Shown here: piece by piece, positions 22,596 through 47,539 of the stretch
Layout: each line of letters starts with the position of its first letter
Numbering within the stretch: position 1 is the stretch's first letter
Virus record (IMG/VR): IMGVR_UViG_3300019458_000020
Coordinates: 62,001-126,000 of that record
Strand: one strand, 5' to 3'
DNA length: 64,000 bases
Position numbers and translations under genes: made by a program
The notes under the pieces: model-generated
Told to the model about the DNA's origin: nothing
The model's input: the letters and a program-made list of their open reading frames with translations, nothing else
The model's database searches: none

Positions 22596-22616
22596 GTCTA
22601 TAAATATCAATTCGTC

Positions 22617-26679: not shown

Positions 26680-28395
26680 TTAGACTTGGTCCAAATCAGC
26701 AATCAACACACGGCCATAAAATTCCGGCCTTACCATCTTCTTGGCATAACGTGTCATTACGCCCCGGCGGGGAGTAAAGTTCACCGGGTCATAGACCAAC
26801 GGCGTTTGCACCAATGGAATATAAGGAGCGTAAACAGCACCAGTTTCGAGGAAGTTATTTCCACGGAAACCGACGAGGATTACGTTATCCGTCATGTATG
26901 GGTTCTTGTAAACTTGGAATCGGGACGCGAACGTTCCGACACGGCTTACACCCATTGCGAACTTGGCTTGGTCGCCATCCGTGCTGACCACGTATCCAGG
27001 GATGGATTCGAGAATCGTAGCAACGTCTGGGGAACAAACGAGGAAGTTAGCACCACCACGAAGAGTCAATTGGTGAATCCTGTTGGATACCTTTTGAATC
27101 TTGTTACCGAGGGTTTGATACCAAGTTGACTTGGTGTAGTAACCACCGGTTCCAGCAGTCGTTTGATCAACAGCTTGGAAGGTACCACCGACACGAACGA
27201 TTTCACGGTTGAGGCGTGCGCTCCAACGTTCAGTCGTTACAGCTGGTGCATTCGTCAATAGCATGTCGAGGATTTCGAGGTCGATTTCCATCGAGACGTA
27301 TTCAGACAATAATGCAGTCAATTCTGCTTCTGCGTCGATGCTGTGGTAAGCATTCAAGTCTTGAGCGAGCTCAGGGGTCCAAGCAGCTTTCAACTTACGA
27401 GTCTTAGCAACGATAGGTTCGCTCTTGAGTTCGAGGTTGACTTCAGGAATACCGATGTCTTTGTTAAGACCAGTATCCGTAGCAGTCGTCGAAGCACCAA
27501 GATTGTCTTCAAAGTCGCCACGAGCATTATCACGAGGTTGTACCGAGTAGGTGATAGCAAGACCACCGACTGAACCTGTCGTTGAGAATGGGTTCGTTGT
27601 GGTCGAGGCCGATACAACGAATACAACTTCCGAACCGTTAACTTTCGTCAAGGCTGGGAACCAGGTTCCAATGCTTGAACCAGAAACGGTGAACGAGCGA
27701 ACACCGTTAAGATCGATTGGATTACCAGCAGCCAACGATGCCGAGTAAAGGTTTGTGGTAGTAATCTTGTAAAGATGACCAGCAGCCAACGATGCCGAAA
27801 TGACTACCATTTCAGGTGAGGCGTTACCAGTATTCCAGTTGATATCTTCGGCCGAAGCAGAAGCTACCGTGCTGGAGACGCTAGGAGCACCCTTGTCGTT
27901 GATAGAATATCCGAAGCGACCAGCGCCATAAAGACCGCCGGTTGCCGAATCAGTAGAACCGAGCTTGGTGCCCGTACCACCGAACAACGAAGAATAGACA
28001 GAACCACCGAGCGAGCCCGTGGTATCTCTCTGGAACAAACCTTGGGTCGTACCATACTTGAAGTCCAAGTAGAATACCAATCCGGAAGGAAGGTTCATAG
28101 GTTGAACGGAGACGAACTCCTTAGCAGCGAATTCTGCGAATACACGACGAACGAGTGGGAGAGCTACGCCTGCCCATTGTTCGCTGTTTGCCGAAGTACC
28201 AGTGTTGGTAACTTCATCAATGAGTTGCTTTGCTTGGTTTTCAAGCAAAACAGCCATGTTCGACTTTTCAATGTCGTTTTTCAATCCATCGAGAAGACCG
28301 GTTTTGTCCCAACGGGTCACAAGACCACGGGTTTCTTGCATCAGTCTAGCTTGTGGATTGAGAGTATTGGTTAACAGTTGTTTAACGTTTTCCAT
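26680..28395 (-). CDS. gp23: major capsid protein (T4 gp23 family)
   Basis: LLENQ, LPLVRRVF, VSVQPMNLPSGLVFYLDF, AKTRKLKAAWTPELAQDLNAYHSIDAEAEL, VYAPYIPL, FTPRRGVMTRY. Confidence 0.97.
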   Translation of the reverse strand: MENVKQLLTNTLNPQARLMQETRGLVTRWDKTGLLDGLKNDIEKSNMAVLLENQAKQLIDEVTNTGTSANSEQWAGVALPLVRRVFAEFAAKEFVSVQPMNLPSGLVFYLDFKYGTTQGLFQRDTTGSLGGSVYSSLFGGTGTKLGSTDSATGGLYGAGRFGYSINDKGAPSVSSTVASASAEDINWNTGNASPEMVVISASLAAGHLYKITTTNLYSASLAAGNPIDLNGVRSFTVSGSSIGTWFPALTKVNGSEVVFVVSASTTTNPFSTTGSVGGLAITYSVQPRDNARGDFEDNLGASTTATDTGLNKDIGIPEVNLELKSEPIVAKTRKLKAAWTPELAQDLNAYHSIDAEAELTALLSEYVSMEIDLEILDMLLTNAPAVTTERWSARLNREIVRVGGTFQAVDQTTAGTGGYYTKSTWYQTLGNKIQKVSNRIHQLTLRGGANFLVCSPDVATILESIPGYVVSTDGDQAKFAMGVSRVGTFASRFQVYKNPYMTDNVILVGFRGNNFLETGAVYAPYIPLVQTPLVYDPVNFTPRRGVMTRYAKKMVRPEFYGRVLIADLDQV

Positions 28396-29815: not shown

Positions 29816-30026
29816 AATAGTTATAGGTTTCCTATGGGTTTCTGAAGTCATTAAAAAACTTCAATGAAGTCTATCGTAAATCGATTAGCCATTCAGCTAA
29901 ATCGTTAGGCGGCAAATGGGGTTGCTGCATTTCTATTAGATAAATAGTGCGAAAAATCAAAAAATACAAAAAATCTTTATAAAATCAAAACATACTTATA
30001 GTATGGATGTAATTTTTTAATCTATT

Positions 30027-30650
30027 ATGCCTAGCAAATCTAAAGCTCAAAGAAAATTTTTTGGTTTAATTCATGCCTTACAAAGCGGAAAAGTTCATCC
30101 ATCAAAAGTATCACCTACCGTTCGTAAAGCAGCAAAACGGATTAGTAGTAAAGATGTAAAGGATTTCGCAAAAACTCCCGAAGGTCATCTACCATATAAG
30201 GTTAAGAAGGAAATTATATCAGTATTAAAAGAACTGGTAGAACCTATGTATTTGAACGAAGAAGGGGCAAAAGACTCAGTGGCAAAGACTTTCAACACAA
30301 AAGGTAATTTTGAACAATATGTTCAAAAATTCTTAGGTTCCGAGTTTCTTCCAAAGGAATTGGATACCATCCATAGTCACAAAGAACAGAAACCAACAAA
30401 AATTCAAAAAAATGAAGTTCGATATGAAACGACCGGGGATTTTGCAAACAGCACCATCACGGTATTAAAAAAACTCAAAGACGGAAATTCGTTCGCTTAT
30501 ACCGCCTTTACTAAATATTTAAAAAATTCTGAACCAGAAACACCAGAACAAACTGAAGATACCATCGTTGTAACAAAATCACAAGTATTCAACGAAGAAA
30601 TCGATGGTGCAGCAATACTAGCCAATTTTCTAAAAAAACTCGACCTATGA
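30027..30650 (+). CDS. hypothetical protein with DUF3008-like N-terminus
   Basis: MPSKSKAQRKFFG...VKDFAKTP..HLP. Confidence 0.6.
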   Translation: MPSKSKAQRKFFGLIHALQSGKVHPSKVSPTVRKAAKRISSKDVKDFAKTPEGHLPYKVKKEIISVLKELVEPMYLNEEGAKDSVAKTFNTKGNFEQYVQKFLGSEFLPKELDTIHSHKEQKPTKIQKNEVRYETTGDFANSTITVLKKLKDGNSFAYTAFTKYLKNSEPETPEQTEDTIVVTKSQVFNEEIDGAAILANFLKKLDL

Positions 30651-30946
30651 TAAAATTGATGGAGATATATCATACCGTTGAAGAAGAAGACCGAACAGGA
30701 ATGGTTCCTGTGGAAGAATGGAAACTTCAACACACAGAACATCTAAATGATATTGGATTTTTAGATGATGGTATGTATCACATGTCTCTAAAAAGTCCTT
30801 CGATGAAGGTATCATATAAAAAGGGTAAAGGATTCATGTTGGAAGATAAAAAGAAGAAAAAATCACACGTATTCCCACGATTCAGTTCATTATGTCAACA
30901 TCTTGAAGATTATGACCAGCAGTGGGACTCACAACCATACCTATGA
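30647..30946 (+). CDS. MIKL-leader hypothetical protein
   Basis: MIKLMEIYHTVEE. Confidence 0.55.
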   Translation: MIKLMEIYHTVEEEDRTGMVPVEEWKLQHTEHLNDIGFLDDGMYHMSLKSPSMKVSYKKGKGFMLEDKKKKKSHVFPRFSSLCQHLEDYDQQWDSQPYL

Positions 30947-31329
30947 CCAGCTTAGAAAGAAAAGAATACAATAGAAATTACCGCCAGAAAAATAGGTCGA
31001 GGTTATTAGAAGATAAAAAACAGTGGTATCAGAAAAATAAAAACAATCCCGGATACAAAGAAAGAAATTACGCTAGTGGAATACGATTTAAATATAGTAT
31101 TTCAGTAGAAGAAGTTAATCGAATGTTAGAAAAACAATCCAATAGATGTGCTATTTGTGAACGAGAATTTACAACTAGAAAAACCACTCACATCGACCAT
31201 TGTCATTTGACTGGTAAAGTCAGAGGAATACTATGTGAAGGTTGTAATGTCGGCATTGGCTGTTTTGAAGACGATGTTAAAAAATTAAAAAAAGCAATAA
31301 ATTACCTATCAATTTTAGATGGTGTTTAA
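30943..31329 (+). mobile_element. Endonuclease VII-like (HNH/Zn) homing endonuclease
   Basis: QSNRCAIC, HIDHCHLTGKVRGILCEGCNVGIG; likely start ATG 30943. Confidence 0.85.
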
Positions 31330-31352
31330 GGAAATCAATCATATTTATAATC

Positions 31353-31931
31353 ATGAACAAAGAAAATCTAACAGTAAAAGAATTTAGTCTCAAACGTATC
31401 GTTGAGAATATGGATAAGATTCCAAACAACGGTAAGTTCGGAGACGAGCTTAAAAAGCTCACTCCAGAAGAAAAGAAAAAATTGATGGAGATGGTTGCGA
31501 AGTATAACGAATATGGAAACGTATTGCGTTGTGAACAAGCATTAATGGAAACCGCCAAAACATTGGAAGAGATTGCTCGTATGGCTGAAACTTATGCCGT
31601 GACCGAATCATCTGATTGGTTTCAATCCAAGGTTGTTGAGAGGGATTTCAAACAAGTTCGTGGTATTGCTGGAGATTTCAAAAAACTTACAAAGGAATGT
31701 TTCGGAAAACTTCAACAGTTAAATGCTTTGTATGAAGACATGGGACATGTTCTTGGTCGTTATTATGAGATTTCAACGATGAAAGAAATGGCACAGTCTG
31801 CTGGATTAGATTCTACCCAACCTTCTATTCCTATGGAAGAAAAACAAATCATGGATGAAGTAGAAGAAGATGTAGATGTTGTGGCTCCGGTCAGAACAAA
31901 TCCTCCGGTTCAAACGTCGAGAGTGTCTTAA
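31353..31931 (+). CDS. helical hypothetical (probable head) protein
   Basis: LNALYEDMGHVLGRYYEI; preceded by TATTTATA; SLKRIVE leader-like segment. Confidence 0.6.
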   Translation: MNKENLTVKEFSLKRIVENMDKIPNNGKFGDELKKLTPEEKKKLMEMVAKYNEYGNVLRCEQALMETAKTLEEIARMAETYAVTESSDWFQSKVVERDFKQVRGIAGDFKKLTKECFGKLQQLNALYEDMGHVLGRYYEISTMKEMAQSAGLDSTQPSIPMEEKQIMDEVEEDVDVVAPVRTNPPVQTSRVS

Positions 31932-31950
31932 TTTATGTTCGGAATGGGAG

Positions 31951-31981
31951 AGAGGGCAATCGAAAGATTATCCTCTTTTTT
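31951..31981 (+). terminator. intrinsic terminator
   Basis: AGAGGGCAATC-GAAA-GATTATCCTCT followed by a T run. Confidence 0.7.
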
Positions 31982-31988
31982 ATGTACA

Positions 31989-32015
31989 GAAAAAAGGAAG
32001 GTCGAAAGACCTTCC
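31989..32015 (-). terminator. intrinsic terminator of the SPFH gene
   Basis: Perfect GGAAGGTC/GACCTTCC stem with a T7 tail on the minus strand. Confidence 0.75.
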
Positions 32016-32043
32016 CTCGTGTGTAGTTAAACAAACAATTTAA

Positions 32044-33285
32044 TTACTTGGTGGATGATGGTGCCGGTGATGCGCCCATATTCATCAACAACGGACTATT
32101 AGATGGAAGGATGTTGGAAGGCATTTGTCCATTCCATTTCTTTGCCATTTCCAATCTGGCTTGAGCTTCCATCATTTGTATTTCCAGATTGTTCTTCATG
32201 GCTGCTGCTTCACGGGCCTTGAACAGTTCCTCTGCTGACCTACGTTCTGTTTCAGCCGAAGCGAATATCTTCAAGTTACGTTGGTCCTGTGCCAACTTTT
32301 CTTGATGAGCAGTCTTATTATCTTGTTCTGCAATAAATGTGGCATTAAGAGCTTTCTGAATGTCATCACGTTTGAATTCATAACCTTCAGCGTTACCCAT
32401 CTGAATGATGGAGATACCCTTTGTTTTGAAGAATTCTTTTGCGTCAACGAACACCTTTTGGAAAATAGCTGGGAAATTCGTTTGAGCTTGCTGAAGGTCC
32501 ATTTGACCATAAGCTTTAGTTAATTCAGATACACACCAATTACGAACGTTATTGTCCATAACGGTAGCCAGTGGAGTTTCGCCGTGGTAATAAAGATATT
32601 CGGCTGCATCTTCCTCTTCGATGAAGGCGGTGACAGCACAACCAACACCCAATTGAATAGAATCACGAGTCACAACAGGAATGCTAGTGTCGGCTTCTCC
32701 CTTATTAGACGGCGGCGACCACTCACGGCTCACCATAGCACGATTGACCTTAATGACACGAACAGCATCAATCCATTCAATTTCATAATCCCAACGACCG
32801 ACTTTCTTTTCAGTCTGAGGAATCAAAATTCGTTTAGCGGCAACCTTCTTGGTGTTCAAGTATTCGGCACTATCAAACTTTCCTTGAGAAGTCTTGTTAT
32901 CACCCTGTAACGGAATCACAAAAACGGTTTCATTAGGACCAACTTCGACGAATTTATCCAACTTAGGTGGTTTGAGACATCCGGTGGTTCCCATTGCTAA
33001 AAAGGCAACAATAGTAGCCGTAAATAGTGGCGCCGCGGTCTTTCTACGAGGCAACCAAATTGAAATGAGAGTGACAACACCCAATACCCAAACAATCGGC
33101 GTAACAATTCCACTTGTGACAGACGGTTTTGTAGTCTGAACAATGTAAGCCGAATCGGAGGATTTGAGTGTTTCCGCAGCCAATCTTCCGTCAATGAGAG
33201 TATCGGTGGCTTGGAAGGTTCGTGTAACGAGGCCGATGAAGGCCACGAGTAAGATACTTAGTATCAATTTTGTTTTTAGTTTCAT
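32044..33285 (-). CDS. membrane-anchored SPFH/Band 7 (prohibitin-like) protein
   Basis: Three hydrophobic segments, then VEVGPNETVFVIP, VVTRDSIQLGV, coiled coil and C-terminal KWNGQMP. Confidence 0.75.
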   Translation of the reverse strand: MKLKTKLILSILLVAFIGLVTRTFQATDTLIDGRLAAETLKSSDSAYIVQTTKPSVTSGIVTPIVWVLGVVTLISIWLPRRKTAAPLFTATIVAFLAMGTTGCLKPPKLDKFVEVGPNETVFVIPLQGDNKTSQGKFDSAEYLNTKKVAAKRILIPQTEKKVGRWDYEIEWIDAVRVIKVNRAMVSREWSPPSNKGEADTSIPVVTRDSIQLGVGCAVTAFIEEEDAAEYLYYHGETPLATVMDNNVRNWCVSELTKAYGQMDLQQAQTNFPAIFQKVFVDAKEFFKTKGISIIQMGNAEGYEFKRDDIQKALNATFIAEQDNKTAHQEKLAQDQRNLKIFASAETERRSAEELFKAREAAAMKNNLEIQMMEAQARLEMAKKWNGQMPSNILPSNSPLLMNMGASPAPSSTK

Positions 33286-33357
33286 AGATTTTCTATTAAT
33301 TTGTTGTTGTTTTACTACTGTTGAGAACTAACTTACATCGTTCTATAAAAAAGTCAA

Positions 33358-33876
33358 TTACAAATTTGTGGTTTGGATATAATTCCTTGTGGCCATTAAA
33401 ATTTTTCCTAATTTGTTCTTACCAATTTCCTTACAAACACCCCAATAAACATCGCCCCAAGAATTTGTTTCTTCGAGATATTTATCTTCGGTTTCTAACA
33501 AAAGAAATTTAAGGTCCAGATTATTGGTGAACTTTTGAAATACGACCTGAGCCATTACAGTATCTTTTACTTTTGACCACATTTCATCATTGAAAAGAGT
33601 TGGGTAGGATTTTATAATTTCATCAGCCAACTTCTTAGATTCACTAGCAGTAATATCAATAAATTCCTTATGATATTTTTTTGGAAATTTTGCTGCTTGA
33701 TAAGCATGTTCGGTAGAAGGAAATAACGTTCCCAACCAAAATGTTCCGATTTTGGTTGGATAAAAATTAGAAAGGAATCGGTTTCTACCAAAGAATCCAC
33801 AAATGGCATAATCGGTCACTGATGCATATTTAGGGATGGTCGTTTCGTCGGTTTCAACATTTACATGATACTTCAT
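33358..33876 (-). CDS. NADAR (YbiA-like) ADP-ribose/N-glycosidase
   Basis: FLSNFY, FPSTEHAYQAAKF, KFTNN..L...LLET, WGDVYWG, GKNKLGKILM. Confidence 0.9.
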   Translation of the reverse strand: MKYHVNVETDETTIPKYASVTDYAICGFFGRNRFLSNFYPTKIGTFWLGTLFPSTEHAYQAAKFPKKYHKEFIDITASESKKLADEIIKSYPTLFNDEMWSKVKDTVMAQVVFQKFTNNLDLKFLLLETEDKYLEETNSWGDVYWGVCKEIGKNKLGKILMATRNYIQTTNL

Positions 33877-33879
33877 AAA

Positions 33880-34041
33880 TCAATAATAATGTAATCCAAA
33901 TCGTTTATAAACATTCTTTGATCTCTTCATTGTTTTAATACGTTTTTTTCTATTAAGAAACATATTTTTATGCATTCTGTATAATAATCCTGATGAACTA
34001 TAATAATAAATCTCTCTTAAATTACAGTATTCAGTAGTCAT
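33880..34041 (-). CDS. small hypothetical protein (53 aa)
   Basis: Read manually: MTTEYCNLREIYYYSSSG...; fills gap, abuts neighbours. Confidence 0.35.
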   Translation of the reverse strand: MTTEYCNLREIYYYSSSGLLYRMHKNMFLNRKKRIKTMKRSKNVYKRFGLHYY

Positions 34042-34371
34042 TTAATCCCATCCGTAACATCCACAATAAAATTCATCATATTCCCTTGTTGGATTATGTT
34101 GAAAAAATGCTAAATTGGTATTTGATGGTTTTTCACAGAGACAAAAATTTCCTTTCTTACATCCATCCCGTTCCGGTCCTTCGTGATTTCTTCCTTTTGG
34201 AAGAGTGTTATAATAAGAACATCTAGCCATTCTTCCTAAGAACAATGGTGGAGTTTCGTTCACAATTAAAGCATCAGGAGTAAGACCTGCACAAATTACA
34301 CAAGAGGGTTTGCCATCGCCCGTCGTAGCATTAGCAGCGTGACCACACATCATCATTGGCTTATCATTCAT
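34042..34371 (-). CDS. Cys-rich hypothetical protein
   Basis: CGH, CVIC, C-terminal YDEFYCGCYGWD. Confidence 0.6.
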   Translation of the reverse strand: MNDKPMMMCGHAANATTGDGKPSCVICAGLTPDALIVNETPPLFLGRMARCSYYNTLPKGRNHEGPERDGCKKGNFCLCEKPSNTNLAFFQHNPTREYDEFYCGCYGWD

Positions 34372-34379
34372 ATTAAGTA

Positions 34380-34544
34380 TTAATTTTCTAAAGCCCTCGA
34401 CTTCGATTTTAATTTTTGATATCTCTTGTAGAGAGATAGATATTCCTTTGCAAGATATTCTACACCATAATATATTTCCAGATCTCTTTTTTGGAACATC
34501 TCCAACATCTCCTTTAATTCATCTCTTTGGTCTTGATTTATCAT
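34380..34544 (-). CDS. small hypothetical protein (54 aa)
   Basis: Read manually: MINQDQRDELKEMLEMFQKRD...; ATGA overlap with the upstream stop. Confidence 0.45.
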   Translation of the reverse strand: MINQDQRDELKEMLEMFQKRDLEIYYGVEYLAKEYLSLYKRYQKLKSKSRALEN

Positions 34545-35662
34545 AACTGAGCATACTTCTCGTAGAGTCGATGATATAAAGCATTTAGCTTTTCAAAATC
34601 CACCGAACGAGGAATTTTTGTTGTCTTGTAGGCTTCATCCATTTTGGATTGAATATTCTTAGCGTGAGTCATTACCTTTTCATAATCCCAACCACCGTTT
34701 TTAATGTGTAAGATTTCTTCAGCATCAGGACGCTTAACGATGACTTTTCCTTCTGTAAGAATTTCATATCCCATTCTCATGAGACGAACCAAATGTGAGG
34801 CGTGTTTCGTATCATATCCACTCTTTACTTCGAGTTTATGACGGTCAACATTACGATTCTTTTTCCAGTTCAACCAAGAACTATATTGTTCTTTAGCCTT
34901 CTTATATTGACGTTCACGATTAAGCAAATCAACGACTTCATCCTTTAAGTCATATTCTTTTGCCAATCTATCAACTACGGCAGCCTCATAGGCTCCTGGC
35001 CAATTATCCCAACCAACATGTAATTGAGAAACATTATCCACCAATTCCCAAATGGTTTCTTTTAGTTCACTTCGTTCCATTTCTTCCATTGGAAACTTGG
35101 ACAAATTCCACCGTTCAACTTCACTCTTGATGAAGCCAAATACTTCATCTAGTTGACGAGCACGAACATCGGGAAGACCATACTCTGAACGAGTAGGTTC
35201 CTTTAATTCACCCAAAACAATCCACTTACGATGACGTTCAATTTTGGCAGCCTGTGACATAGCATATCCTGAAAATGTATATTTGGCTTTGGAACTAAGA
35301 AATAAATCTCTATTTTCCATTAAAGAAACAATGGCAGGCTTGAAAATCAAATGATCTTGTGGTTCAGTCCATAACAATTCAATGATATTTGGATTAACGT
35401 TTGCAGCCAATACCATGAATTTTTTAAGTGAATAAATAACCGATTCGAATTTTGGATTGTTTGGATTTTTATATAATTCCCATTGATTTTCCACATCGAT
35501 ATTATTTTCAGCTTGTTCAAATTTATGAAATAAATTATACTCTACACTCTTAGGTGGAATAACAATACCTTTTACATCGCAATCTGACAGTTCATTTGAA
35601 AGTCCGTAACATCGGCTTCCATGAAGAGTCAAATAAATTGTATTTTTTGTTAACCATTCCAT
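34541..35662 (-). CDS. Pol-beta-superfamily nucleotidyltransferase (YcgL/RlaP-like)
   Basis: HGSRCYGLSNELSDCDVKG, NPNIIELLW, FSGYA, GYDTKHASHLVRL. Confidence 0.8.
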   Translation of the reverse strand: MEWLTKNTIYLTLHGSRCYGLSNELSDCDVKGIVIPPKSVEYNLFHKFEQAENNIDVENQWELYKNPNNPKFESVIYSLKKFMVLAANVNPNIIELLWTEPQDHLIFKPAIVSLMENRDLFLSSKAKYTFSGYAMSQAAKIERHRKWIVLGELKEPTRSEYGLPDVRARQLDEVFGFIKSEVERWNLSKFPMEEMERSELKETIWELVDNVSQLHVGWDNWPGAYEAAVVDRLAKEYDLKDEVVDLLNRERQYKKAKEQYSSWLNWKKNRNVDRHKLEVKSGYDTKHASHLVRLMRMGYEILTEGKVIVKRPDAEEILHIKNGGWDYEKVMTHAKNIQSKMDEAYKTTKIPRSVDFEKLNALYHRLYEKYAQL

Positions 35663-36522
35663 AATATTTTATCTAAATTTTTAAGTTCCTTTTCGGTCAC
35701 AACCATGTATTTATATCCGTTATCATTACAATATTTTCTTCCATTGTCTATTTTTAATTTATTGTTTCCAACACTTAACAATGATTGTGGTTTTATTTCA
35801 ATCACTACCCGTTGATTAATAACAAAATCAGGAAAATAATTTCTATCTTTTCCGGCGCTGTCAATGTAAGATACCACGAAATTTGGTTTTTGTAAAGCAG
35901 TTATTTTATTTGACGACTCACAAAATTTCAAGAACAATTTTTCATACGAACTTTGATAATAAAGTTTGAGATTAAATTTATTACTCACAAACCATCCAGT
36001 TTCACAATTGGAATAGGGATGATGATTACCATTTAACATTGATTTTATTACGTTTTGTACATTTCTTTTACACAACTTTTCGTATTGAATTGGATCTTTG
36101 CATTTTTCTTTCCAAGATTCGGATAGTCTTTGAGAATATCTCCGTCTATTTTTTGGGTCTTTATTTAACCATTTAACTAATGGATTTTTATCCCCAGTAA
36201 AATCAGCATGATTGACTGACATTTTCTTTCTTGTTTTTTGAGTGTGAGTTTTTCCGAAGAATGGATTTCTTTCTCCAGAATTCATTTTCTGATATTGTTT
36301 TTTTCTTTCTTTTGTAAACTCATATCCTTTCATCCATTTTCCACAACCTGACCGTTTACATGATTTCGATACAATATTTTTAATTGAATCCAAAACAAGT
36401 GTGGTATTTGGATACTTACTAAGAAATTCTTTAGTAGAAAGTTTATGTTTGAAATGAATATGAGAATTCAACGTTTGAAATTGATTCTGACAGATTGGAC
36501 AGACTAAAAGCTCTTTTTTCAT
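35650..36522 (-). mobile_element. homing endonuclease: C2H2 + NUMOD3 + TnsA-like PD-(D/E)xK
   Basis: CPIC..HIHFKH; GERNPFFGKTH; YQSSYE, RNYFPDF, IEIKP. Confidence 0.8.
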
Positions 36523-36561
36523 ACACTTATAAATATATAAGCATATTCAGAAAAGGTCAAT

Positions 36562-36813
36562 TCATTTTTGTATAGATTTCATTCTATCCATAAGATATTC
36601 ATATTTCCATTTCGAGTAAGAATATATAATTTTTCGTTTTCCATTTGACAAATATTTAATAAAAACGTTTCTTTTGCTGTGGTATTCCCATGTTTCCGAC
36701 CCATTTTTGAATTGATAAACACCGTTTTGACATTTTGGACAATCCAAATCTTTCCAAGAATCAAATTCTTCTCCACAATCTTTACATTTTGTATCTGGAT
36801 TGTAAAAATTCAT
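36562..36813 (-). CDS. small Zn-ribbon hypothetical protein
   Basis: Likely start 36813 (MNFYNPDTKCKDC...CPKC). Confidence 0.5.
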   Translation of the reverse strand: MNFYNPDTKCKDCGEEFDSWKDLDCPKCQNGVYQFKNGSETWEYHSKRNVFIKYLSNGKRKIIYSYSKWKYEYLMDRMKSIQK

Positions 36814-36829
36814 AACATTAAAGTCAACT

Positions 36830-37222
36830 TCAAACTTTGTTGGTGAGTAGAAACCAAATAGAAGATACCCAATCCATCGCCCACTTTTTAAATCGTTGCC
36901 AACATGTCGGTTTGATTTTAACAAAATCCATATAAAACGTATTGGCCGAAGGTTCATTCATTGGCTGACACGATATCAAATCAGTGATGTGTAAGTTTTC
37001 TGGTATATTTTTTATTATAGGAAAAATAAACGATTCAAGTTTTCTTAATTTTCTTTTAACGAATAGTCTTTTAAACCATCGTTTAATTCTCTGCCAACGT
37101 GTGAGTGGTTTAGGAACATCAATGATACACTGGGGAGTAATATACAATGGTATATAGGGAGCATACACAACAATCTTATGTTTTGTTGATTCCGGTCTAT
37201 TCATGTACCAATAAAAACTCAT
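36830..37222 (-). CDS. small protein made of two major-capsid-protein-derived motifs (putative capsid mimic)
   Basis: VYAPYIPLYITP vs MCP VYAPYIPLVQTP; FPII...ISCQPMNEPSANTFYMDF vs MCP LPLV...VSVQPMNLPSGLVFYLDF. Confidence 0.7.
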   Translation of the reverse strand: MSFYWYMNRPESTKHKIVVYAPYIPLYITPQCIIDVPKPLTRWQRIKRWFKRLFVKRKLRKLESFIFPIIKNIPENLHITDLISCQPMNEPSANTFYMDFVKIKPTCWQRFKKWAMDWVSSIWFLLTNKV

Positions 37223-37224
37223 AA

Positions 37225-37749
37225 TTATTTTATCTCTTCAAACGGCTTATCACAAAGTAAATCAACAAATCTCATTATTCTTTTATAAACATCATCATCC
37301 TTGGTGAAATTCCACTTTTTAGTTGCAGAATCATCGATCCATTCTTTCAAAGATGTACCAAATTCTTCGCTCCGCGATTTGATATCACATACAAATTCAG
37401 CAAGATATACTTCAGGCATATCATTTATACCTCCTGACCAATTTTCCGGATGATGTGGATTAGTAGAATTGTGCTGTTGTATCGCAAGTTTAAGTTTCAT
37501 TTTTGCACCATCGGCGTCAGCATCAATACCGGGAGACATAAACTCAAATTCAATTCCGTGAAATTTACTTGCGTCATGAACGAATCCATTCGCGATAAGT
37601 TGCTTTCCCAACTCAATTTCACCAGACATTATCAATTTCTCTCCTAATAAAAGACAATTATCTTCTACATTTCTAATATGTCTAGTGATACCACGTATTT
37701 TTTCCATAGTTGCGGTAGCATCCCTTTTAAGTTTCTCGGATTTTTTCAT
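37225..37749 (-). CDS. HD-superfamily phosphohydrolase (DUF5662-like)
   Basis: RHIRNV, HDASKF, HNSTNPHHPE, EFVCD. Confidence 0.7.
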   Translation of the reverse strand: MKKSEKLKRDATATMEKIRGITRHIRNVEDNCLLLGEKLIMSGEIELGKQLIANGFVHDASKFHGIEFEFMSPGIDADADGAKMKLKLAIQQHNSTNPHHPENWSGGINDMPEVYLAEFVCDIKSRSEEFGTSLKEWIDDSATKKWNFTKDDDVYKRIMRFVDLLCDKPFEEIK

Positions 37750-37764
37750 AATGTATCTATTAAT

Positions 37765-37792
37765 AAGATACCATTTTTATACTTGTTGTCAA
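37765..37792 (-). promoter_or_regulatory. sigma70-like early promoter
   Basis: TTGACA-16-TATCTT with TGn extension, upstream of the HD gene and the capsid-mimic gene. Confidence 0.55.
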
Positions 37793-37809
37793 CTTTCGTT
37801 GGTGAAATC

Positions 37810-38055
37810 TTACGATTTCTCCGGTTCATTAAACGACTCTTTATATTTGCGCATCCAACGCATGAACAACAAGGCTTTATCACTAGCAAGTAAAGATACT
37901 TTAGAATTCCTCACTTCTTCCAATGATATAGGAAATCTATAACCTTTTTCGGTTTCATACCAAAATTGGTCATCTCTGAACAATACAAAATGAACCTTTT
38001 GTCCATCTCTTACATGTTCTTTAAAATCTACTGTTTTTGGGTCAACGTAATTCAT
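37810..38055 (-). CDS. small hypothetical protein
   Basis: WYETEKGYRFPI...LLASDKALLFMRWMRK. Confidence 0.6.
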   Translation of the reverse strand: MNYVDPKTVDFKEHVRDGQKVHFVLFRDDQFWYETEKGYRFPISLEEVRNSKVSLLASDKALLFMRWMRKYKESFNEPEKS

Positions 38056-38564
38056 ACAATTTTTCCATCGGTTACTAACACTCTGACAGCTTCTTTAGTC
38101 TTGACTCTAAGATTTCGAGACTTCAAAAACTTACCCTTCAATCCTTCAAAAACTTGAATCATATTGGTAAGAGTGGATTTTTTTCTTTTGGCTCCTTCAT
38201 TTTGATCTTTTGCTGCATCGCATAATTTTGCTAATGCTTTTCCTGCGTCATCGCCTTCTCTTTGTTGGATTACCCAACCCATCAATTCGTTTCCATCCAA
38301 TACATTATCAGGGTCATTAACAATAATTAAATATTCCATCTTTTCCTTTGGAGTAGATTCTGCTCCGGGGTCGGAAGGAAGACCATCTTCGTCGATTTGA
38401 TTTCCTATTCCGTCAGTAGGAGCACCTGCTGCCTCCCTTGCATTATCTACAGCCACTTCTTCGACAATCTCTTGTAATTCTCGAATAATTTCTGCGACCT
38501 TCTTGGGGTCAATTTTCTTTTGTAATAATACTGTTTCTACTTCGGTTATATCAATTTTCATCAT
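38052..38564 (-). CDS. hypothetical protein
   Basis: Intact ORF downstream of a sigma70-like promoter. Confidence 0.6.
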   Translation of the reverse strand: MMKIDITEVETVLLQKKIDPKKVAEIIRELQEIVEEVAVDNAREAAGAPTDGIGNQIDEDGLPSDPGAESTPKEKMEYLIIVNDPDNVLDGNELMGWVIQQREGDDAGKALAKLCDAAKDQNEGAKRKKSTLTNMIQVFEGLKGKFLKSRNLRVKTKEAVRVLVTDGKIV

Positions 38565-38621
38565 TTTTATTAATTGTCAGTAAATTATTTACTGAGTTGT
38601 ATTTTGTATCTTCATATACAA

Positions 38622-38650
38622 AATTTATCATTTCTACTCAGAGTTGTCAA
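38622..38650 (-). promoter_or_regulatory. sigma70-like early promoter
   Basis: TTGACA-17-TAAATT with TGn extension. Confidence 0.6.
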
Positions 38651-38689
38651 TATGTATTAACACCAACATAGGTAATCGATGAGGTATGT

Positions 38690-39388
38690 ATGAAATTTAA
38701 AAGAAATTGTCCTAAATGTAAAGTTCCTATTTTTTACAATAGAAAAGACTCCTTACAACGAGCCATCAATCAGAAACGGATGTGTTTTAATTGTAATACT
38801 CCTAAAGGAAATAAACATTATCGATTTGGAAAACATTGCAGTCAAGAAATTAAAGATAAAATACGTAAAACTAAGATGGGTGTGCCGATTCATACTATAG
38901 AAGAAAAGGAGAAACGAAGACTTCTTTGGTGTGGAGATAAAAATCCTAATGTAAAATATGGTCCATCATTTTTAGGAAGACATCATACAGAAGAAACTAA
39001 AGAGAAGATGAGAATTTCTTATGTTAAAACAGTCATAAAAAATGGTGGGAGAAATCCAAGATTCAATTTAAATGCAATAAACTATTTTAAAAAGTTGGAA
39101 TTGGAATTTAATTGGAATGGAATTTATGCCACTAAAAATTCGGAATATTTCATCGAAAGTTTGGGATATTTTGTTGATTATTATGAACCCCATTTAAATA
39201 TTGTAGTAGAATATGATGAACCTAGACATTATTATGCAAATGGAACTTTAAAACAGAAAGATATTAAAAGAATGGAAAAAATAATATCTAAAATTGATTG
39301 TAAATTTTATAGATATGATGAGAAAAGAAATCTACTTAAAGAATATTTCATTGATTCGGGTGTATTCGTTCCCACTTTACACCACTGA
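38690..39388 (+). mobile_element. homing endonuclease: Zn ribbon + NUMOD3 + Vsr/DUF559-like nuclease
   Basis: CPKC..CFNC, GRHHTEETKEKMR, GYFVDYY, VVEYDEPRH; antisense to its neighbours, 3' end overlaps guaC. Confidence 0.8.
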
Positions 39389-40295
39389 AAGCAGAAAGGT
39401 CTGTACCTCCGGAATATGATATTGCACTTTGCAATGATTCTTGAATTTCACGAAGACGTTCGTGATAAGTAAACCCCTCTTCGAGAGCCAATGTTCTGCC
39501 TTCAATGTGTTTGTGTTCTCCCTTCGAATCAAACGATGTTGATCCACGATAAATCTTTTTTCCATTTTCTATTTTTGCTGGAGAATCTATACAAGATGCG
39601 AACCATCCACCTGACATAACCATCGTCGCTCCAAACGTCAAAGCTTTAGCAATATCTCCAAAGTGTCTTGCTCCACCATCAGCAATAATAGGAATATTTA
39701 ATCCTGCTGATGCTGCTTCATACACCGAATGAAGTGTTGGTAAATGGAATCCAGTTTTAAACCGCGTTGTACAAATACTTCCGCCACCTATACCAACTTT
39801 TACGGCATCGGCTCCACACTCACATAAAAATTTATATCCATCAGCAGTTGCTACATTTCCAAGTATAAGTTTTGATGTGGGCGTCATTTTTTTAATGAAA
39901 TTTACCATCTCTTCTGTTTTCTTATGATGTCCGTGGGCGACATCAATGGTAATAAAATCCGGAATACCAATAGTAAGAAGAGCGTGTAAATCTTCTTTTG
40001 AATCATCATTTACACCCAAACTGATACTTTTTAAAGTAATATCTCGTTCCCTAGCATGCAACATGAAATTTGTTGGAGCATCATTAAATCGATGCATAAT
40101 ATAAAAACACCCAAGTTTATCCAATAATTGTGCATTATCAAATGATATAACATCTTCCATATTCGCGGGAATAACCGGAACTTTGAAGGTCTTACCCAAG
40201 AACTCAACCCTTGTGTCAGCTTTTGACCGAGAGGGTAATTCAGAATACTTAGGACGCAAACATACAGTATTATAGGAAAATAAAAAATCACTCAT
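39348..40295 (-). CDS. guaC: GMP reductase
   Basis: PVIPANM, IMHRF, ITIDVAHGH, GNVAT, KVGIGGGSICTTR, IIADGG..HFGDIAKAL, LQSAISYSG; no CBS domains. Confidence 0.9.
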   Translation of the reverse strand: MSDFLFSYNTVCLRPKYSELPSRSKADTRVEFLGKTFKVPVIPANMEDVISFDNAQLLDKLGCFYIMHRFNDAPTNFMLHARERDITLKSISLGVNDDSKEDLHALLTIGIPDFITIDVAHGHHKKTEEMVNFIKKMTPTSKLILGNVATADGYKFLCECGADAVKVGIGGGSICTTRFKTGFHLPTLHSVYEAASAGLNIPIIADGGARHFGDIAKALTFGATMVMSGGWFASCIDSPAKIENGKKIYRGSTSFDSKGEHKHIEGRTLALEEGFTYHERLREIQESLQSAISYSGGTDLSAFSGVKWERIHPNQ

Positions 40296-40342
40296 AACCA
40301 ATCAACGTAACCTATCGTATCCTTCAGGTAAACTAATTTTAA

Positions 40343-41380
40343 TTAGATGGTGTAATCAATCGGTTCTTGGGGTTTAGAATTGACTACTTGGGAAGATAAT
40401 TTTCTTATACGAGAAAGATTCTTAATGATGATTCGGAGTTTTGTAAAAATGTCATGAAAGTCATTTTTGATTGGGTATTTTCCAACTTTATCTTTTATAA
40501 GATTGACAATTTCTCCGATATCCTTGTTTGAGATGTCTATTCCTAACGCATGTGCCGTATTTCTTAAAACCTTTATAATAGGATTATACGTAGTATTTAA
40601 GAAGGATTGTAACATTCTAGCAATCGTCTGTTTCTCTTCGTCTGTTAAATTGGCTATAGTCTTAGGAAGAACAATTCTTGGTGTTTCTTCTCCGATATTT
40701 AAATCTTCCAATGATGCTTTAAGATCAGCTGGCAAATGGTCTAAAACGATCTTTAGATTTTTATTTTTACTCGAAATTAAATTATCAAAATAAGACTTCA
40801 AATATTTTCCCATTTTGAGAACATCTTCCGAAGGTTGTTGCACATTGGATTTTGGCATACCTGCTGGAGCTGATGGTTTTGGAGAATTCATCTGATTGAT
40901 GTATGTGATTACATCATCATAGTCTTTATAGAAATCGGTTAATGCCTGTAATCCATTATTAGTTAATTCGATTTCAGGATGATATCCATTCTGTTTTAAT
41001 TTTATGGCAGCCTTGGTAGGGTCATCCTTTATACCAAAATAATCAAGAATTTCTTGAGTTGCGTTTTGCCACTCTTTAGAAAGTTGATTGGCGAATTTAG
41101 AAACGTTTGCGTCTTTCCAATCGGTATGAATTTCTTTAGCTTTCTTTTTAATGTCATCAAACCAACCTTCGTATAAGGATTCGGTTATATGAATCTGTTT
41201 TAAAATATTATCAACCACCGACTCAAGAGGACGATATTCTGGTTTTGATTTGATGTATTTTTGAAGCTTCTGTAGAATATCAATTTTTTTGCGGTTGTAT
41301 TTATTAATAATCTGTGTTACAACCACATCTTCATGTTGAACTTCTTGAAGTCTTGCCTTCATTTTATTCCATGTTTCCAA
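40343..41380 (-). CDS. hypothetical helical protein (possible internal head protein)
   Basis: Overlaps the protease gene end; RLQE and SLYE/GWFD are candidate cleavage sites. Confidence 0.55.
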   Translation of the reverse strand: METWNKMKARLQEVQHEDVVVTQIINKYNRKKIDILQKLQKYIKSKPEYRPLESVVDNILKQIHITESLYEGWFDDIKKKAKEIHTDWKDANVSKFANQLSKEWQNATQEILDYFGIKDDPTKAAIKLKQNGYHPEIELTNNGLQALTDFYKDYDDVITYINQMNSPKPSAPAGMPKSNVQQPSEDVLKMGKYLKSYFDNLISSKNKNLKIVLDHLPADLKASLEDLNIGEETPRIVLPKTIANLTDEEKQTIARMLQSFLNTTYNPIIKVLRNTAHALGIDISNKDIGEIVNLIKDKVGKYPIKNDFHDIFTKLRIIIKNLSRIRKLSSQVVNSKPQEPIDYTI

Positions 41381-41990
41381 GAATGTCTCGAATGATGGTT
41401 TCGGTCTTTTCCCATTTTCCGGTTATAGGATTCTTAACTTGACTGACTCCTTCATTCAGACTTCCTTCTGGATACAGAAATGCACCACGAGTAGATGGAT
41501 TAGAAACGAAATCAAAAGCAATAAGTTCAAAATCAGGTTGAACTACATCCACATCTTCAGACATGTTTTTCTTAACCGTTCCAAGTCCACGACTGGAAAT
41601 ACCTAATCTAATATTTGAACGGAAGAGTTCTTTTAAGATGTTTCCATTGGGTGTAGGTAATACTTCTACAGTTCCAACCAAATCATCATTTTCCCAATGC
41701 ATTTCAACAATGTTATGAGAAACGTTTTGAAGATTGACAACGGAAGATTCTGGATGGTCTAATTCTCCTAATGCTCTACGTTCTTTAATAAAATTCTCTT
41801 CATATTTTCCTGCTTCACGAAGAAGAATTTCACGAGTATAAACACGACCGTTTTGATTTTTCTTTCCGGCACGTTGTAGAACACCTTTGACGATCAATCT
41901 TCGGTTCATGTCGCCTGCGGCTTGTTCAAAGAGGGTATCTCTTACGAAATCGAATGGGATACAATCTACTAATAGTCTCTTATCATTCAT
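41364..41990 (-). CDS. gp21: prohead protease (T4 gp21 family)
   Basis: KGVLQRA..KNQNGRVY, ALGELDHP, NVSH, TPNGNIL, GISSRGLG, FDFVSNPSTRGA. Confidence 0.95.
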   Translation of the reverse strand: MNDKRLLVDCIPFDFVRDTLFEQAAGDMNRRLIVKGVLQRAGKKNQNGRVYTREILLREAGKYEENFIKERRALGELDHPESSVVNLQNVSHNIVEMHWENDDLVGTVEVLPTPNGNILKELFRSNIRLGISSRGLGTVKKNMSEDVDVVQPDFELIAFDFVSNPSTRGAFLYPEGSLNEGVSQVKNPITGKWEKTETIIRDILGNME

Positions 41991-44419: not shown

Positions 44420-47400
44420 TTACTCGTCAATTATATTACTTTCATCCATTAATGATGGTGTATTTTCGGTTTCTTTAATTAACTCCTTCTTTTCCTTGAC
44501 TGCTCTTTTTCCAGAAAGATGTGTATCCAAAGATTTTATAATTTGTTGATTCATTACGAATTTTGCGGATTTCGGAAGGACATTTTCTAAATTTAATGGA
44601 GAAGTCTTGTTCCGAAGAGATTTCAACTTCTTTTGTTTTTCTATTTCTAATTTTAATGCAGAATTCATTTCCAAGGTGCCTCTTGGGTCTTCGCCGAATC
44701 TAAAATCTCGTCTGGCATTTTTTACTCCCTTTTGGGATGGTCGTTCATAATCCTCTGCGTGTTCTCCATGACCCTCCTTTACATCTTCCGATTCTGTTAG
44801 ACCGGTATCCTTTCCAGCCGGTTCACCCAGAGCCGCTGCTAAATCAGCTTCATCTCCTTCACCACCCGGACCTCCCTCGTCGCCCATATCTGGCCCTCCA
44901 CCTAAATCCGGTCCTCCGCCGGGCCCGCCTTCATCACCACCTGGCTCTCCGCCAGGTCCACCCTCTGGATTAATTTTATTAAATGGTTTTGCTGGGTCAT
45001 TACCATCTTCTTCTATTTGCTTTATTCTCCAAGCTTGGATAGCGTCTTCTATAACCGCCTTCGCAATTTCATCGGTATCATCATCCGAAAGATTGAAAAT
45101 ATTTTTATAAATCCAAGATTTAGAAAATAATTTAGCTTCCATCATGTTCGATGCAACATCAACCTTATTACCCCACAATTCGATTTTCTCCTTTTCAAAG
45201 ATTGTGGATGGGTTGGTTAGTTCTAATCTAAAGTTAACTAATTTTTCATCTCTATATCCCTGTGAATAAAGATGAAGAATAGAAATTTTTTCCAATTCTG
45301 ATACGATAATTCCTTGAATTCTTTGAATTGTCTTTGCGAAACGAATATCTTCGGAAGCCAAGGTGGCTTTTCCGGATAATTCGTCTTCATAACCCAAAAA
45401 TGCTTTAGGAATTTTTAAAGCAGCCATCATCTTATTTCTAAGATATTCAATATCTTCAATTCCTGTGAATTCCATTCCACCCAACGTATCAATAGAGGAT
45501 CCACTATCACTTCCACGAACAGGTAGATAAAAATCTTCTACCATGTTTTGAAGATTGAATCGAAGGTTATAATCTCCGGTTTGTGGGTCTAAATAAGGGA
45601 CTTTCTTCATTTTGGAGATTACTTTTTCCATGTATGCATCTACTTCTCCGGGTGGAATATTTCCTACATCCATCTTAAAAATACGTTTTTCAGGAGCACG
45701 CATGATTCTGTGAATCAACATAGCGTCTTCCATCAAACTTAATTGTTTCCAAATACGTCGAGCACTTTCTATCATAGATTTTCCATAAGGAAGAAAATTA
45801 GAATCAGAAATTAATCGAAAGTGTGCCAATTCAAAAGACTCCAAAGTTTCTACAGCAGAAGTATCGGTAGGACGAATTTGAAACTTTACGTAGTTTTTAT
45901 TCATCGGGTCGGAATTTTCAATTCGTTCTACATTATATGCAGAAACAGGCTCGATTTGATAAACACCGTATTCTGGAGAGATATAAGTTCTAAGATAGAA
46001 ATCTCCGTATTTACATAAATTTCTTGTCCAAGACCAAAGATTAAATTCAATATTAAGAATATCATAATGAAGATTATGAAGCACTTCTTTTATATTATCA
46101 TCTTCAGTATGAACGGTAAGAATTTTACCCATTTCATTTTTTGTAACACATTCATCAGCGTAAATATCTAAAGCAGAGGCTAATATGGGGTCCATATCCA
46201 TTGTATTTGAAACAAAACAACTATCTGTAGAAAAGTTTTTATACTTCTCTACAGTTACATCATAAACATCAACTTCACCAATACTTTCAATGGATACTAT
46301 TTTATGGTTTAAAGTTGATTCTACTTCTTGCTTAAAAGATTTCCAGTCATGACCTTCTTTTTTCAGACGGTTTTGAAGAGTAGAATGATCACATCGAATA
46401 TGTTTAATAAAATCCCATAGATTTATCTTGGAGTTTTCTTTGTAGAATTCCAACGCTTTTTCTTTTACATTAGAAAAGGTTATATCTCCACGATATTTTG
46501 GATTACGTTCTTCCGTTTGATTTCTATCCTTGAACACTTCTTTAAGAGTTTCAGAACGAGTTTTATTTGATTTTTCAGAATGGGTTTTTCCAAAAAAAGG
46601 ATTATTTTCACCAACTCGTTCTCCATCCCAATGATGAAATTTACGGTTAATATAGTTTGGGTGCGATTTTAATTTATTGAGTTGATTTTCATAATTTTCA
46701 TCCCCCCACAATATATTTTTACTATAATTAGAATGAAATTGTATATGTTCATCCTTCGTCATTATTTGTAAATTGTCGGGGGAATTATCATAACCGTTGA
46801 AGTTTTTATGATGAACCACTTCGTTGTCATTCAATGATCGGTCAAATTGTTCCGCAACTACAACGTGTTCAGATTGCCAACCTTTAGAAAAGTTATACAG
46901 TTTTTTATATTTATTATATTTACAGTTATAATCCTTTTGATAGAAAGGCATCACAGAATCGCCTACACGAAGTTCATATATCATTTTATACGAACCATCT
47001 CGCATCATAAACGGATGTTTCAAACTTCCAACGACATACTGTCCGTTATCAAATATTACCTTGTAACCAATGCGTTTACCTTTTTTCTTTCTAGGATGAT
47101 ACGCTTTACCTAATTTAATAGAATCTGTTTCGTGGTCATAGGAAAATACATAAAACCGTTCTTGTGGTTTATCTTTATATTTTTCAGCAAGTTCTGATAT
47201 TGTTGGTCGAGAACCATCTGGCAACGGAATGATGGTATCTGGACCGACACAATCGTAATCCCTGAACAAATCGATGCGAGCAGCTTGATAAGATAAAGCA
47301 AAATCTCTTGTATATGCATTATACGCAGTAGAACGGACACGATTGAATCTATCTCGAAGGCTGTTTCTATCTGTTGCGTATCCTAACTGACTGGTATCCT

Positions 47401-47539
47401 TTACTTTTAATTTTTTTCCACCTACGTTACGAACTACCGCACCAGAGGATAAAAGTCTTTTTAATCTAGCATACAGCGACTTTTGCTTTACATCTATTTC
47501 GTCTTCGTTTCCGAATGGTTTTAAGTTATTTACCGGCAT
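44420..47539 (-). CDS. gp20: portal vertex protein (T4 gp20 family), intein-containing
   Basis: DPILASALDIYADE, RNLCKYGDFY, LPYGKSMIESARRIWKQL.LMEDAMLIHRIMRAPEKRIF, EDFYLPVRG, ALKIPKAFLG. Confidence 0.93.
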   Translation of the reverse strand: MPVNNLKPFGNEDEIDVKQKSLYARLKRLLSSGAVVRNVGGKKLKVKDTSQLGYATDRNSLRDRFNRVRSTAYNAYTRDFALSYQAARIDLFRDYDCVGPDTIIPLPDGSRPTISELAEKYKDKPQERFYVFSYDHETDSIKLGKAYHPRKKKGKRIGYKVIFDNGQYVVGSLKHPFMMRDGSYKMIYELRVGDSVMPFYQKDYNCKYNKYKKLYNFSKGWQSEHVVVAEQFDRSLNDNEVVHHKNFNGYDNSPDNLQIMTKDEHIQFHSNYSKNILWGDENYENQLNKLKSHPNYINRKFHHWDGERVGENNPFFGKTHSEKSNKTRSETLKEVFKDRNQTEERNPKYRGDITFSNVKEKALEFYKENSKINLWDFIKHIRCDHSTLQNRLKKEGHDWKSFKQEVESTLNHKIVSIESIGEVDVYDVTVEKYKNFSTDSCFVSNTMDMDPILASALDIYADECVTKNEMGKILTVHTEDDNIKEVLHNLHYDILNIEFNLWSWTRNLCKYGDFYLRTYISPEYGVYQIEPVSAYNVERIENSDPMNKNYVKFQIRPTDTSAVETLESFELAHFRLISDSNFLPYGKSMIESARRIWKQLSLMEDAMLIHRIMRAPEKRIFKMDVGNIPPGEVDAYMEKVISKMKKVPYLDPQTGDYNLRFNLQNMVEDFYLPVRGSDSGSSIDTLGGMEFTGIEDIEYLRNKMMAALKIPKAFLGYEDELSGKATLASEDIRFAKTIQRIQGIIVSELEKISILHLYSQGYRDEKLVNFRLELTNPSTIFEKEKIELWGNKVDVASNMMEAKLFSKSWIYKNIFNLSDDDTDEIAKAVIEDAIQAWRIKQIEEDGNDPAKPFNKINPEGGPGGEPGGDEGGPGGGPDLGGGPDMGDEGGPGGEGDEADLAAALGEPAGKDTGLTESEDVKEGHGEHAEDYERPSQKGVKNARRDFRFGEDPRGTLEMNSALKLEIEKQKKLKSLRNKTSPLNLENVLPKSAKFVMNQQIIKSLDTHLSGKRAVKEKKELIKETENTPSLMDESNIIDE
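46205..47251 (-). mobile_element. intein (349 aa) with HNH endonuclease in the portal protein
   Basis: N-junction RDYD/CVGPDTII.L.DG; block B SLKHPFM; HNH VVHHKNFNGYDNSPDNL; block F VYDVTV; C-junction FVSN/T; exteins rejoin as RDYD-TMDMDPIL. Confidence 0.9.

Follow-up and report, generated by a model that had tools for sequence, protein, structure and literature searches.

Why would a large phage carry, in addition to its major capsid protein (MCP), a small separate gene assembled from pieces of the same protein? This question is raised by an ORF in a 64,000-nucleotide stretch of an uncultured phage (hereinafter, the window; positions 62,001 to 126,000 of IMG/VR record IMGVR_UViG_3300019458_000020). 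The initial annotation, made from the sequence alone, described the product as two permuted MCP fragments, each followed by the same basic tag, and proposed an early-expressed decoy for immune systems that sense capsids. We first asked whether the resemblance is genuine, then whether the gene is maintained by selection and how widespread it is, and finally which functions are compatible with the evidence.

A small protein with two permuted capsid protein segments

The relevant features of the locus, all on the minus strand, are as follows.
36830..37222, minus strand: gene for the 130-aa MCP-derived microprotein (pI 10.0, 7 Trp)
37133..37168, minus strand: C-type MCP motif, residues 19-30 (VYAPYIPLYITP), corresponding to the first strand of the MCP C-terminal P-domain hairpin
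37061..37111, minus strand: tag 1 / helix 1, residues 38-54, a cationic, Trp-rich amphipathic helix (predicted)
36923..37024, minus strand: N-type (Gol-equivalent) MCP motif, residues 67-100, the end of the N-arm plus the first P-domain strand
36842..36913, minus strand: tag 2 / helix 2 (predicted), residues 104-127, a repeat of the tag (KPxxWQRxKxW) followed by a hydrophobic Trp-rich tail
26680..28395, minus strand: gene for the Gp23-type MCP (571 aa), the source or model of both motifs, with donor segments at 28060-28161 (residues 79-112) and 26728-26883 (residues 505-556)
37225..37749, minus strand: upstream DUF5662 gene (Pfam E 1.2e-20), with its stop 2 bases before the microprotein ATG, so that the two are probably co-transcribed
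36562..36813, minus strand: downstream small zinc-ribbon ORF, taken from the ATG at 36813, with weak Zn-ribbon/HypA hits; it is not conserved in the related contig L002 and is given for context only

The observation in the initial annotation proved correct. The MCP is recognized by Pfam Gp23 (E 1.3e-76), is 54% identical to the MCPs of Microcystis phage Mel-JY01 and the Flavobacterium immuto phages, and aligns to T4 gp23 structures; its start lies 8,435 bases from the end of the small ORF. BLASTP of the small protein against the MCP yielded exactly the two reported matches, namely, residues 67-100 to MCP residues 79-112 (12/34 identical, E 5e-7) and residues 19-30 to MCP residues 521-532 (10/12 identical, E 3e-4), in reversed order relative to the MCP. 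The two tags, KPLTRWQRIKRWF at residues 38-50 and KPTCWQRFKKWA at residues 104-115, are real and conserved in the homologs described below.

Several lines of evidence exclude chance. When the MCP was used as the query against all 109 ORFs of the window, this ORF was the only significant hit (E 9.5e-5; second match 0.06). None of 2000 shuffles of the small protein reached its score, and 1 of 2000 did so for the first 60 residues alone. Raw local alignment scores are not unique to this ORF, because longer Gly/Ser/Thr-rich proteins of the window score similarly, and we therefore relied on composition-corrected BLAST. Pfam Gp23 independently hits residues 65-102 against profile positions 7-44 only (E 3.9e-4, 20.4 bits), below the gathering cut-off of 24.4 bits, and tblastn finds the same segment in MCPs of distant phages such as RM378, Mel-JY01 and the immuto phages. 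A profile of the three homologs hits the window MCP in both segments (E 1e-6 and 4e-6); across the MCPs of the window and of the related contigs L002, L003, L004 and L005, both the N-terminal and the C-terminal conserved blocks are hit with E of 1e-6 to 1e-7 each.

The resemblance is held at the protein level. At the DNA level, the C-type and N-type segments are only 67% and 46% identical to the MCP gene, respectively, and few identical residues share a codon (4 of 10 in the C-type motif), which rules out recent gene conversion from the MCP. A gene-calling artifact was also considered and rejected, as was a homing-endonuclease footprint, because the flanking endonuclease genes differ between homologous loci while the gene stays.

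Homologs, gene neighborhood, and selection

A word-based search identified two full-length homologs, P0002 (148 aa) and P0003 (131 aa), and a profile search added a partial one, P0005, all at the same place in related phage contigs. The N-terminal MSFYWYMN is conserved in P0002, which supports the ATG at 37222, whereas the window copy lacks about 22-24 residues present in P0002. In the homologs, the C-type piece is longer, extending upstream (GYRGSTFMED.. against GFRGNNFLET.. ) and following the MCP in the same order through about 50 residues, including the region of the first tag, which aligns to the MCP C-terminal tail FTPRRGVMTRYAKKMV. Thus, the ordered duplication of motif plus tag, which the initial annotation took for a design, is partly explained by ancestry and is partly a family-wide feature (see below). 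The invariant positions are the two MCP motifs and the WQRxKxW tags, with TxWQRxKxW of the first tag conserved in the three homologs.

Gene order is conserved in the three contigs: terminase, portal, prohead protease, a roughly 345-aa protein, an IMPDH-like gene, DUF5662, the microprotein, RlaP nucleotidyltransferase, NADAR, a 471-aa protein, and the MCP. In the related contigs L001 and L002, 1-3 extra small genes lie between the DUF5662 and microprotein genes. The gene thus lies in an accessory block of about 11 kb that splits the head module; the closest cultured relatives, Mel-JY01 and immuto, have compact head modules with no such block between the protease and MCP genes. Against L001, the neighboring genes are 73-96% identical in protein, but the microprotein is only 46-58% identical, and its dN is 0.34 compared with 0.03-0.20 for the neighbors, that is, 2-4 times that of most of them. 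Because dS is saturated at 1.5 or more, dN/dS of roughly 0.1-0.2 is only a rough bound, but dN is well below dS. The gene evolves fast but is constrained, a pattern typical of accessory and counter-defense genes. Absence of homologs and neutral evolution had been named in advance as outcomes that would sink the decoy reading, and neither was observed.

The claim of early expression from a sigma70-like promoter is not supported. The site in question is one of 50 such sites in 9.5 kb, against 40 +/- 6 expected by chance, and it lies upstream of the DUF5662 gene rather than of the microprotein gene. T4 late-type TATAAATA yielded 18 sites against 9.3 expected, but none lies upstream of the DUF5662 gene and the microprotein gene, so that the sequence favors neither timing, and the position within a block that splits the head module does not show early expression either.

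A large family of small proteins with the capsid motif

Stand-alone ORFs with the MCP motif, the recurrence of which the initial annotation had proposed to examine, recur widely. A profile of the three proteins run against 1.84 billion representative proteins produced 346 hits at E of 0.001 or better; of the best 150, 68 are small proteins of 58-260 aa, and the rest are full-length MCPs hit in both blocks. A second search added more small members, several of them on contigs of 100-250 kb, for a total of about 90 distinct small proteins that share the core. Pfam sees only Gp23 in 43 of the 49 small members scanned, and PHROGs contains no family for the window microprotein.

The distribution is patchy. 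No near-identical DNA was found in GenBank phages, and tblastn with three family members (the window protein, P0028, and P0015) against 50,697 GenBank phage records, including Mel-JY01 and immuto, hit only MCP genes. The scan of 185,579 reference genomes gave one hit, on a 5-kb contig from a metagenome-assembled genome. Hits were few in IMG/VR or JGI contigs: in IMG/VR, the FYMD pattern returned 78 MCPs and 2 small proteins, and more specific alignments gave 7 and 3 loci, whereas the metagenome scan gave 10 loci, mostly short.

In the roughly 90 small members, Q, P, and M of VQPM, P+5, Y+11, and D+13 are 88-100% conserved; overall, VQPM, P+5, F+10, Y+11, and D+13 are kept at 80-100%, as strongly as or more strongly than in MCPs. 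By contrast, positions conserved in MCPs are relaxed, namely, R-15, the aromatic at -12, L-9, and A-7. This pattern fits conservation for a partner that binds from outside rather than for packing inside the capsid fold. Of the 90 members, 58 have a Trp/Lys/Arg-rich tag next to the core, and 17 have one on both sides, compared with only 1 of 77 MCPs. Eleven members have Cys-rich N-terminal domains, and 10 also carry the C-type motif, five before the core and five after it. A signal-like RRxF[LIV] N-terminus is present in 17 of 90; a true Tat signal would put the motif in the periplasm, but HMM support is weak (E 0.04-0.09 on TIGR01409, below the cut-off, in 2 of 10), and we report only a resemblance.

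Outside the window subfamily, the genes reside in accessory small-gene arrays or replication modules, for example, between the B-family DNA polymerase and the clamp loader, or next to RecA-like and 5'-3' exonuclease genes. In contig L010, a family member lies next to a truncated prohead-protease paralog that has lost its catalytic His and Ser, suggesting that non-functional copies of head proteins may be kept for another purpose.

Predicted structure and mapping onto T4 gp23

AlphaFold2, run with 49 family sequences, gave a mean pLDDT of 73 and pTM of 0.30. Two helices are confident, residues 42-54 (pLDDT about 95) and 107-127 (pLDDT 92-98), whereas the MCP-like motifs are coil with two short helices at pLDDT 55-70 (62-70 for the N-type motif), without a sheet or strand pairing. 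A fold search was not run on this model because, at such a pTM, matches would be meaningless. Helix 1 has a hydrophobic moment of 0.81, but no 19-residue stretch reaches transmembrane hydrophobicity (maximum Kyte-Doolittle value 1.19), and the window protein has no signal peptide. This looks like a linear epitope displayed between two interfacial helices; membrane binding is an inference from the helix properties.

The family profile aligns to residues 98-134 of T4 gp23 (6uzc), covering the N-arm, the Gol region, and the first P-domain strand, but does not detect gp24, which has the same fold, in the same PDB entries; hence, the fold alone does not dictate the motif. This overlaps the Gol region, which spans approximately residues 93-122 of gp23. 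Gol is described as a 29-residue stretch in the first quarter of gp23 and its most conserved part, which binds EF-Tu domains II/III and enables Lit cleavage of EF-Tu (PMC3014915). The label "Gol-equivalent" in the initial annotation is therefore justified by position. The C-type motif aligns to the gp23* segment GIYYAPYVAL. The mapping was made at the domain level from the T4 papers, and the spatial distance between the two segments was not measured. In T4, residues 66-105 are disordered inside the prohead and later form the N-fist and N-arm on the surface, whereas the P-loops and a positively charged P-domain strand contact a negatively charged helix of the neighboring capsomer (PMC9546572, PMC9958956).

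Possible functions of the microprotein

The interpretation offered in the initial annotation is partly supported: origin from two MCP segments, recurrence, and selection hold, whereas an immune function and early timing are not shown. We are highly confident that the gene encodes a real, selected, MCP-derived microprotein of a previously undescribed family in large uncultured phages. Our analysis demonstrates descent from the MCP, recurrence as a family, selection, lack of an autonomous fold, and the amphipathic helices, whereas membrane location, the partner, and an anti-defense outcome are inferences only.

Given that the near-invariant core survives in small proteins lacking the rest of the capsid fold and that the same-fold protein gp24 lacks the motif, the core appears to be kept for a partner that binds from outside. 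The protein most likely acts by mimicry, competing with newly made, unassembled MCP for whatever binds this most conserved linear segment, with the helices probably holding it on the inner face of the membrane or on another polyanionic surface. Our preferred partner, tentatively, is a host capsid-sensing pathway that reads a short MCP motif, of the Gol/EF-Tu/Lit type; the microprotein would occupy the sensor or its EF-Tu co-factor without triggering it. Lit and CapRel read short MCP motifs (PMC13581612), and the patchy distribution, fast divergence, and non-structural contexts, although not specific to decoys, favor a host-interaction role, as does the inactivated protease paralog in L010. However, in T4 Gol with Lit, the one characterized case of a short-motif capsid sensor of which we are aware, the free Gol peptide activates the sensor (PMC3014915), so that a plain copy should trigger rather than block, and a decoy would have to bind without triggering. 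EF-Tu is very abundant, which makes titration costly, and the signal-like N-termini of some members would place the motif in the periplasm if genuine. Neither binding to EF-Tu, Lit, CapRel, or another sensor nor any effect on Lit cleavage or on defense was assayed, and no host, host defense system, or sensor has been identified. The C-type motif, outside the Gol segment yet present in 10 of 90 members, fits recognition of a P-domain surface or binding to the MCP better.

Close behind is the possibility, likewise tentative, of a capsid-assembly modulator that binds MCP subunits or capsomers, of the same phage or of a co-infecting relative, through the elements that make contacts between capsomers (the N-arm, the P-domain strands, a P-loop-like segment, and a positively charged stretch), as a membrane-bound holdase or nucleator or as a dominant-negative inhibitor. 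Both motifs map to the P domain and N-arm, the C-type motif co-occurs with the core in either order, the window subfamily lies between the protease and MCP genes, and detection of gp23 but not gp24 fits hexamer-specific contacts. Nevertheless, the three family queries found no copy in the closest cultured relatives, other subfamilies sit in replication or accessory regions, the gene diverges fast relative to head genes, and no strand pairing between the two motifs is predicted. Moreover, the MCP motif is nearly invariant, so that the phage's own MCP would be as sensitive as that of a competitor.

Less likely, the protein could bind EF-Tu for the phage's own ends, independent of defense, for example, to tune translation or to use EF-Tu as a folding helper near a surface chosen by the helices. 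Gol binds EF-Tu-GDP and inhibits its GTPase, and gp23 of all T4-like phages may bind EF-Tu (PMC3014915); a core nearly invariant across members of very different amino-acid composition fits a universally conserved partner. However, EF-Tu binding is shown only for T4 gp23, this reading gives no reason for the C-type motif or the signal-like N-termini, and no context links the gene to translation genes.

A packaged internal protein is unlikely. In this view, the N-arm-like segment would be a capsid-targeting signal docking on the scaffold or shell interior, and the basic tags would bind DNA, with injection alongside the genome as for T4 internal proteins. The protein is small, basic, and fast-evolving, and the N-terminal region of the T4 MCP lies in the prohead interior before expansion (PMC9958956), but there is no conserved protease cleavage motif next to the segment in the homologs, most subfamilies are not in head-gene contexts, and 17 of 90 members have signal-like N-termini.

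A functionless remnant of MCP duplication or recombination, suggested by the permuted fragments, the residues missing relative to P0002, and the surrounding mobile elements (two homing-endonuclease genes and an intein), is largely refuted by the intact frame in the three full-length homologs at 46-58% identity with dN well below dS, the conservation of precisely the motifs and tags, the near-invariant core in about 90 distinct relatives, and the lack of DNA-level similarity to the MCP gene.

Capsid proteins are major triggers of bacterial immunity, sensed by Lit, CapRel, Avs7, Avs8, Avs10, and Dsr1 (PMC13581612, PMC9712102). If the tentative decoy reading is correct, large T4-like phages carry a dedicated gene family displaying a tethered, free-standing copy of the most conserved, immune-visible segment of their own capsid protein to blunt sensors of unassembled capsid protein (Lit/Gol-type or CapRel-type, possibly through EF-Tu). 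To our knowledge, this would be the first anti-defense protein made from the trigger itself, and it would imply that sensing of the Gol region is widespread well beyond E. coli e14. The family gives a direct handle on which partner reads this segment, whether the gp23-EF-Tu contact is general, and whether phages can compete with their own trigger. Even if the role lies in head assembly, these would be natural minimal peptides that bind Gp23-type capsomers, useful for studying or controlling assembly. The family is also a clean example of a microprotein born from fragments of a structural gene and then kept under selection.

Comparison with known systems

Literature searches, although not exhaustive in coverage, found no description of capsid-derived decoys or of free-standing small proteins with Gp23 motifs. 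Eukaryotic microProteins, small dominant-negative derivatives of larger proteins, likewise keep only an interaction segment of a larger parent and act by competition, but they come from a different domain of life, and the mechanism of the phage protein is unproven. Trigger-competitor anti-defense proteins, such as DSAD1 against DSR2, embody the same concept, in that a phage protein occupies the site where a defense sensor binds a phage structural protein; however, as far as we know, these are not sequence copies of the trigger, and no sensor is identified here. The core motif corresponds in position to the T4 Gol peptide and, like it, would be a free-standing linear peptide, but Gol is a laboratory fragment of gp23 rather than a separate gene, and it activates a defense system.

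The microprotein is homologous in two segments to the Gp23-type MCP (PF07068, HK97 fold), but it falls outside that family by both the Pfam cut-off and the fold: it covers about 90 of about 570 residues, in reversed order, lacks the spine helix, the A domain, and the insertion domain, is not predicted to fold on its own, and carries Trp/Arg/Lys helices that are rare in MCPs. We regard it as a drastically reduced and permuted derivative of Gp23. The T4 vertex protein gp24, an MCP paralog, is also a derivative of the capsid gene kept in the same genome, but gp24 is full length, folds as an HK97 protein, is structural, and detectably lacks the motif, whereas the microprotein keeps little else.

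Additional sequence features of the window and of the microprotein family

The following features of the window and of the locus L010, which carries another member of the microprotein family, are considered here:
44420-47539 (-), portal gene
35650-36522 (-) and 38690-39388 (+), two free-standing homing-endonuclease-like genes
21933-22610 (-), 225-aa ORF with no family match
L010:5594-6037 (+), truncated prohead protease paralogue, next to the family member at L010:6080-6346
about 29900-41400, accessory block

The portal gene encodes a protein of 1039 aa, compared with 690 aa in the close relative L001. Pfam analysis identified an intein splicing domain at residues 104-443, enclosing HNH and NUMOD3 endonuclease motifs, followed by Portal_T4 at residues 446-829; this is an intein with a homing endonuclease inside the portal protein. 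The two free-standing homing-endonuclease-like genes flank the block that holds DUF5662 and the microprotein; one has NUMOD3 plus a TnsA-like nuclease, whereas the other has NUMOD3 plus a weak PvuRts1I-like hit. In the homologous locus L002, a LAGLIDADG gene is present instead.

Several members of the microprotein family (P0008, P0015, P0035, and P0103) end in a shared acidic-aromatic motif, roughly DYxDYPDFxD[IW]K[DE], located after the Trp-rich tag, which may be a second short binding motif of unknown partner. In a further subgroup (P0026, P0071, P0074, P0097, P0102, P0120, P0124, and P0125), with Arg/Ala-rich composition suggesting high-GC genomes, a Cys-rich, zinc-ribbon-like N-terminal domain (two or more CxxC) is found in place of the Trp-rich tag. 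Within the window, the 225-aa ORF carries QAPIV-DPINFTPR, 10/14 identical to the MCP P-loop segment 530-543 (E-value of 0.001 pairwise and 0.09 against all window ORFs); it may represent a second protein with an MCP-like short motif, although the match may also be due to chance.

The truncated prohead protease paralogue of L010 is 148 aa long (blastp E-value of 7e-11 to the window protease) and is encoded directly upstream of the family member, which has a signal-like N-terminus. The residues at the conserved His (DHPES) and Ser (ISSRG) positions, which we take to be the catalytic residues, are replaced (TEPES and VRMCG, respectively).

The accessory block spans about 11 kb between the prohead protease and the 471-aa protein next to the MCP, and holds IMPDH/GMP-reductase-like, DUF5662, RlaP nucleotidyltransferase, NADAR, and lipoprotein-like genes. 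In Mel-JY01 and the immuto phages, the head genes on the two sides of the block lie close together.
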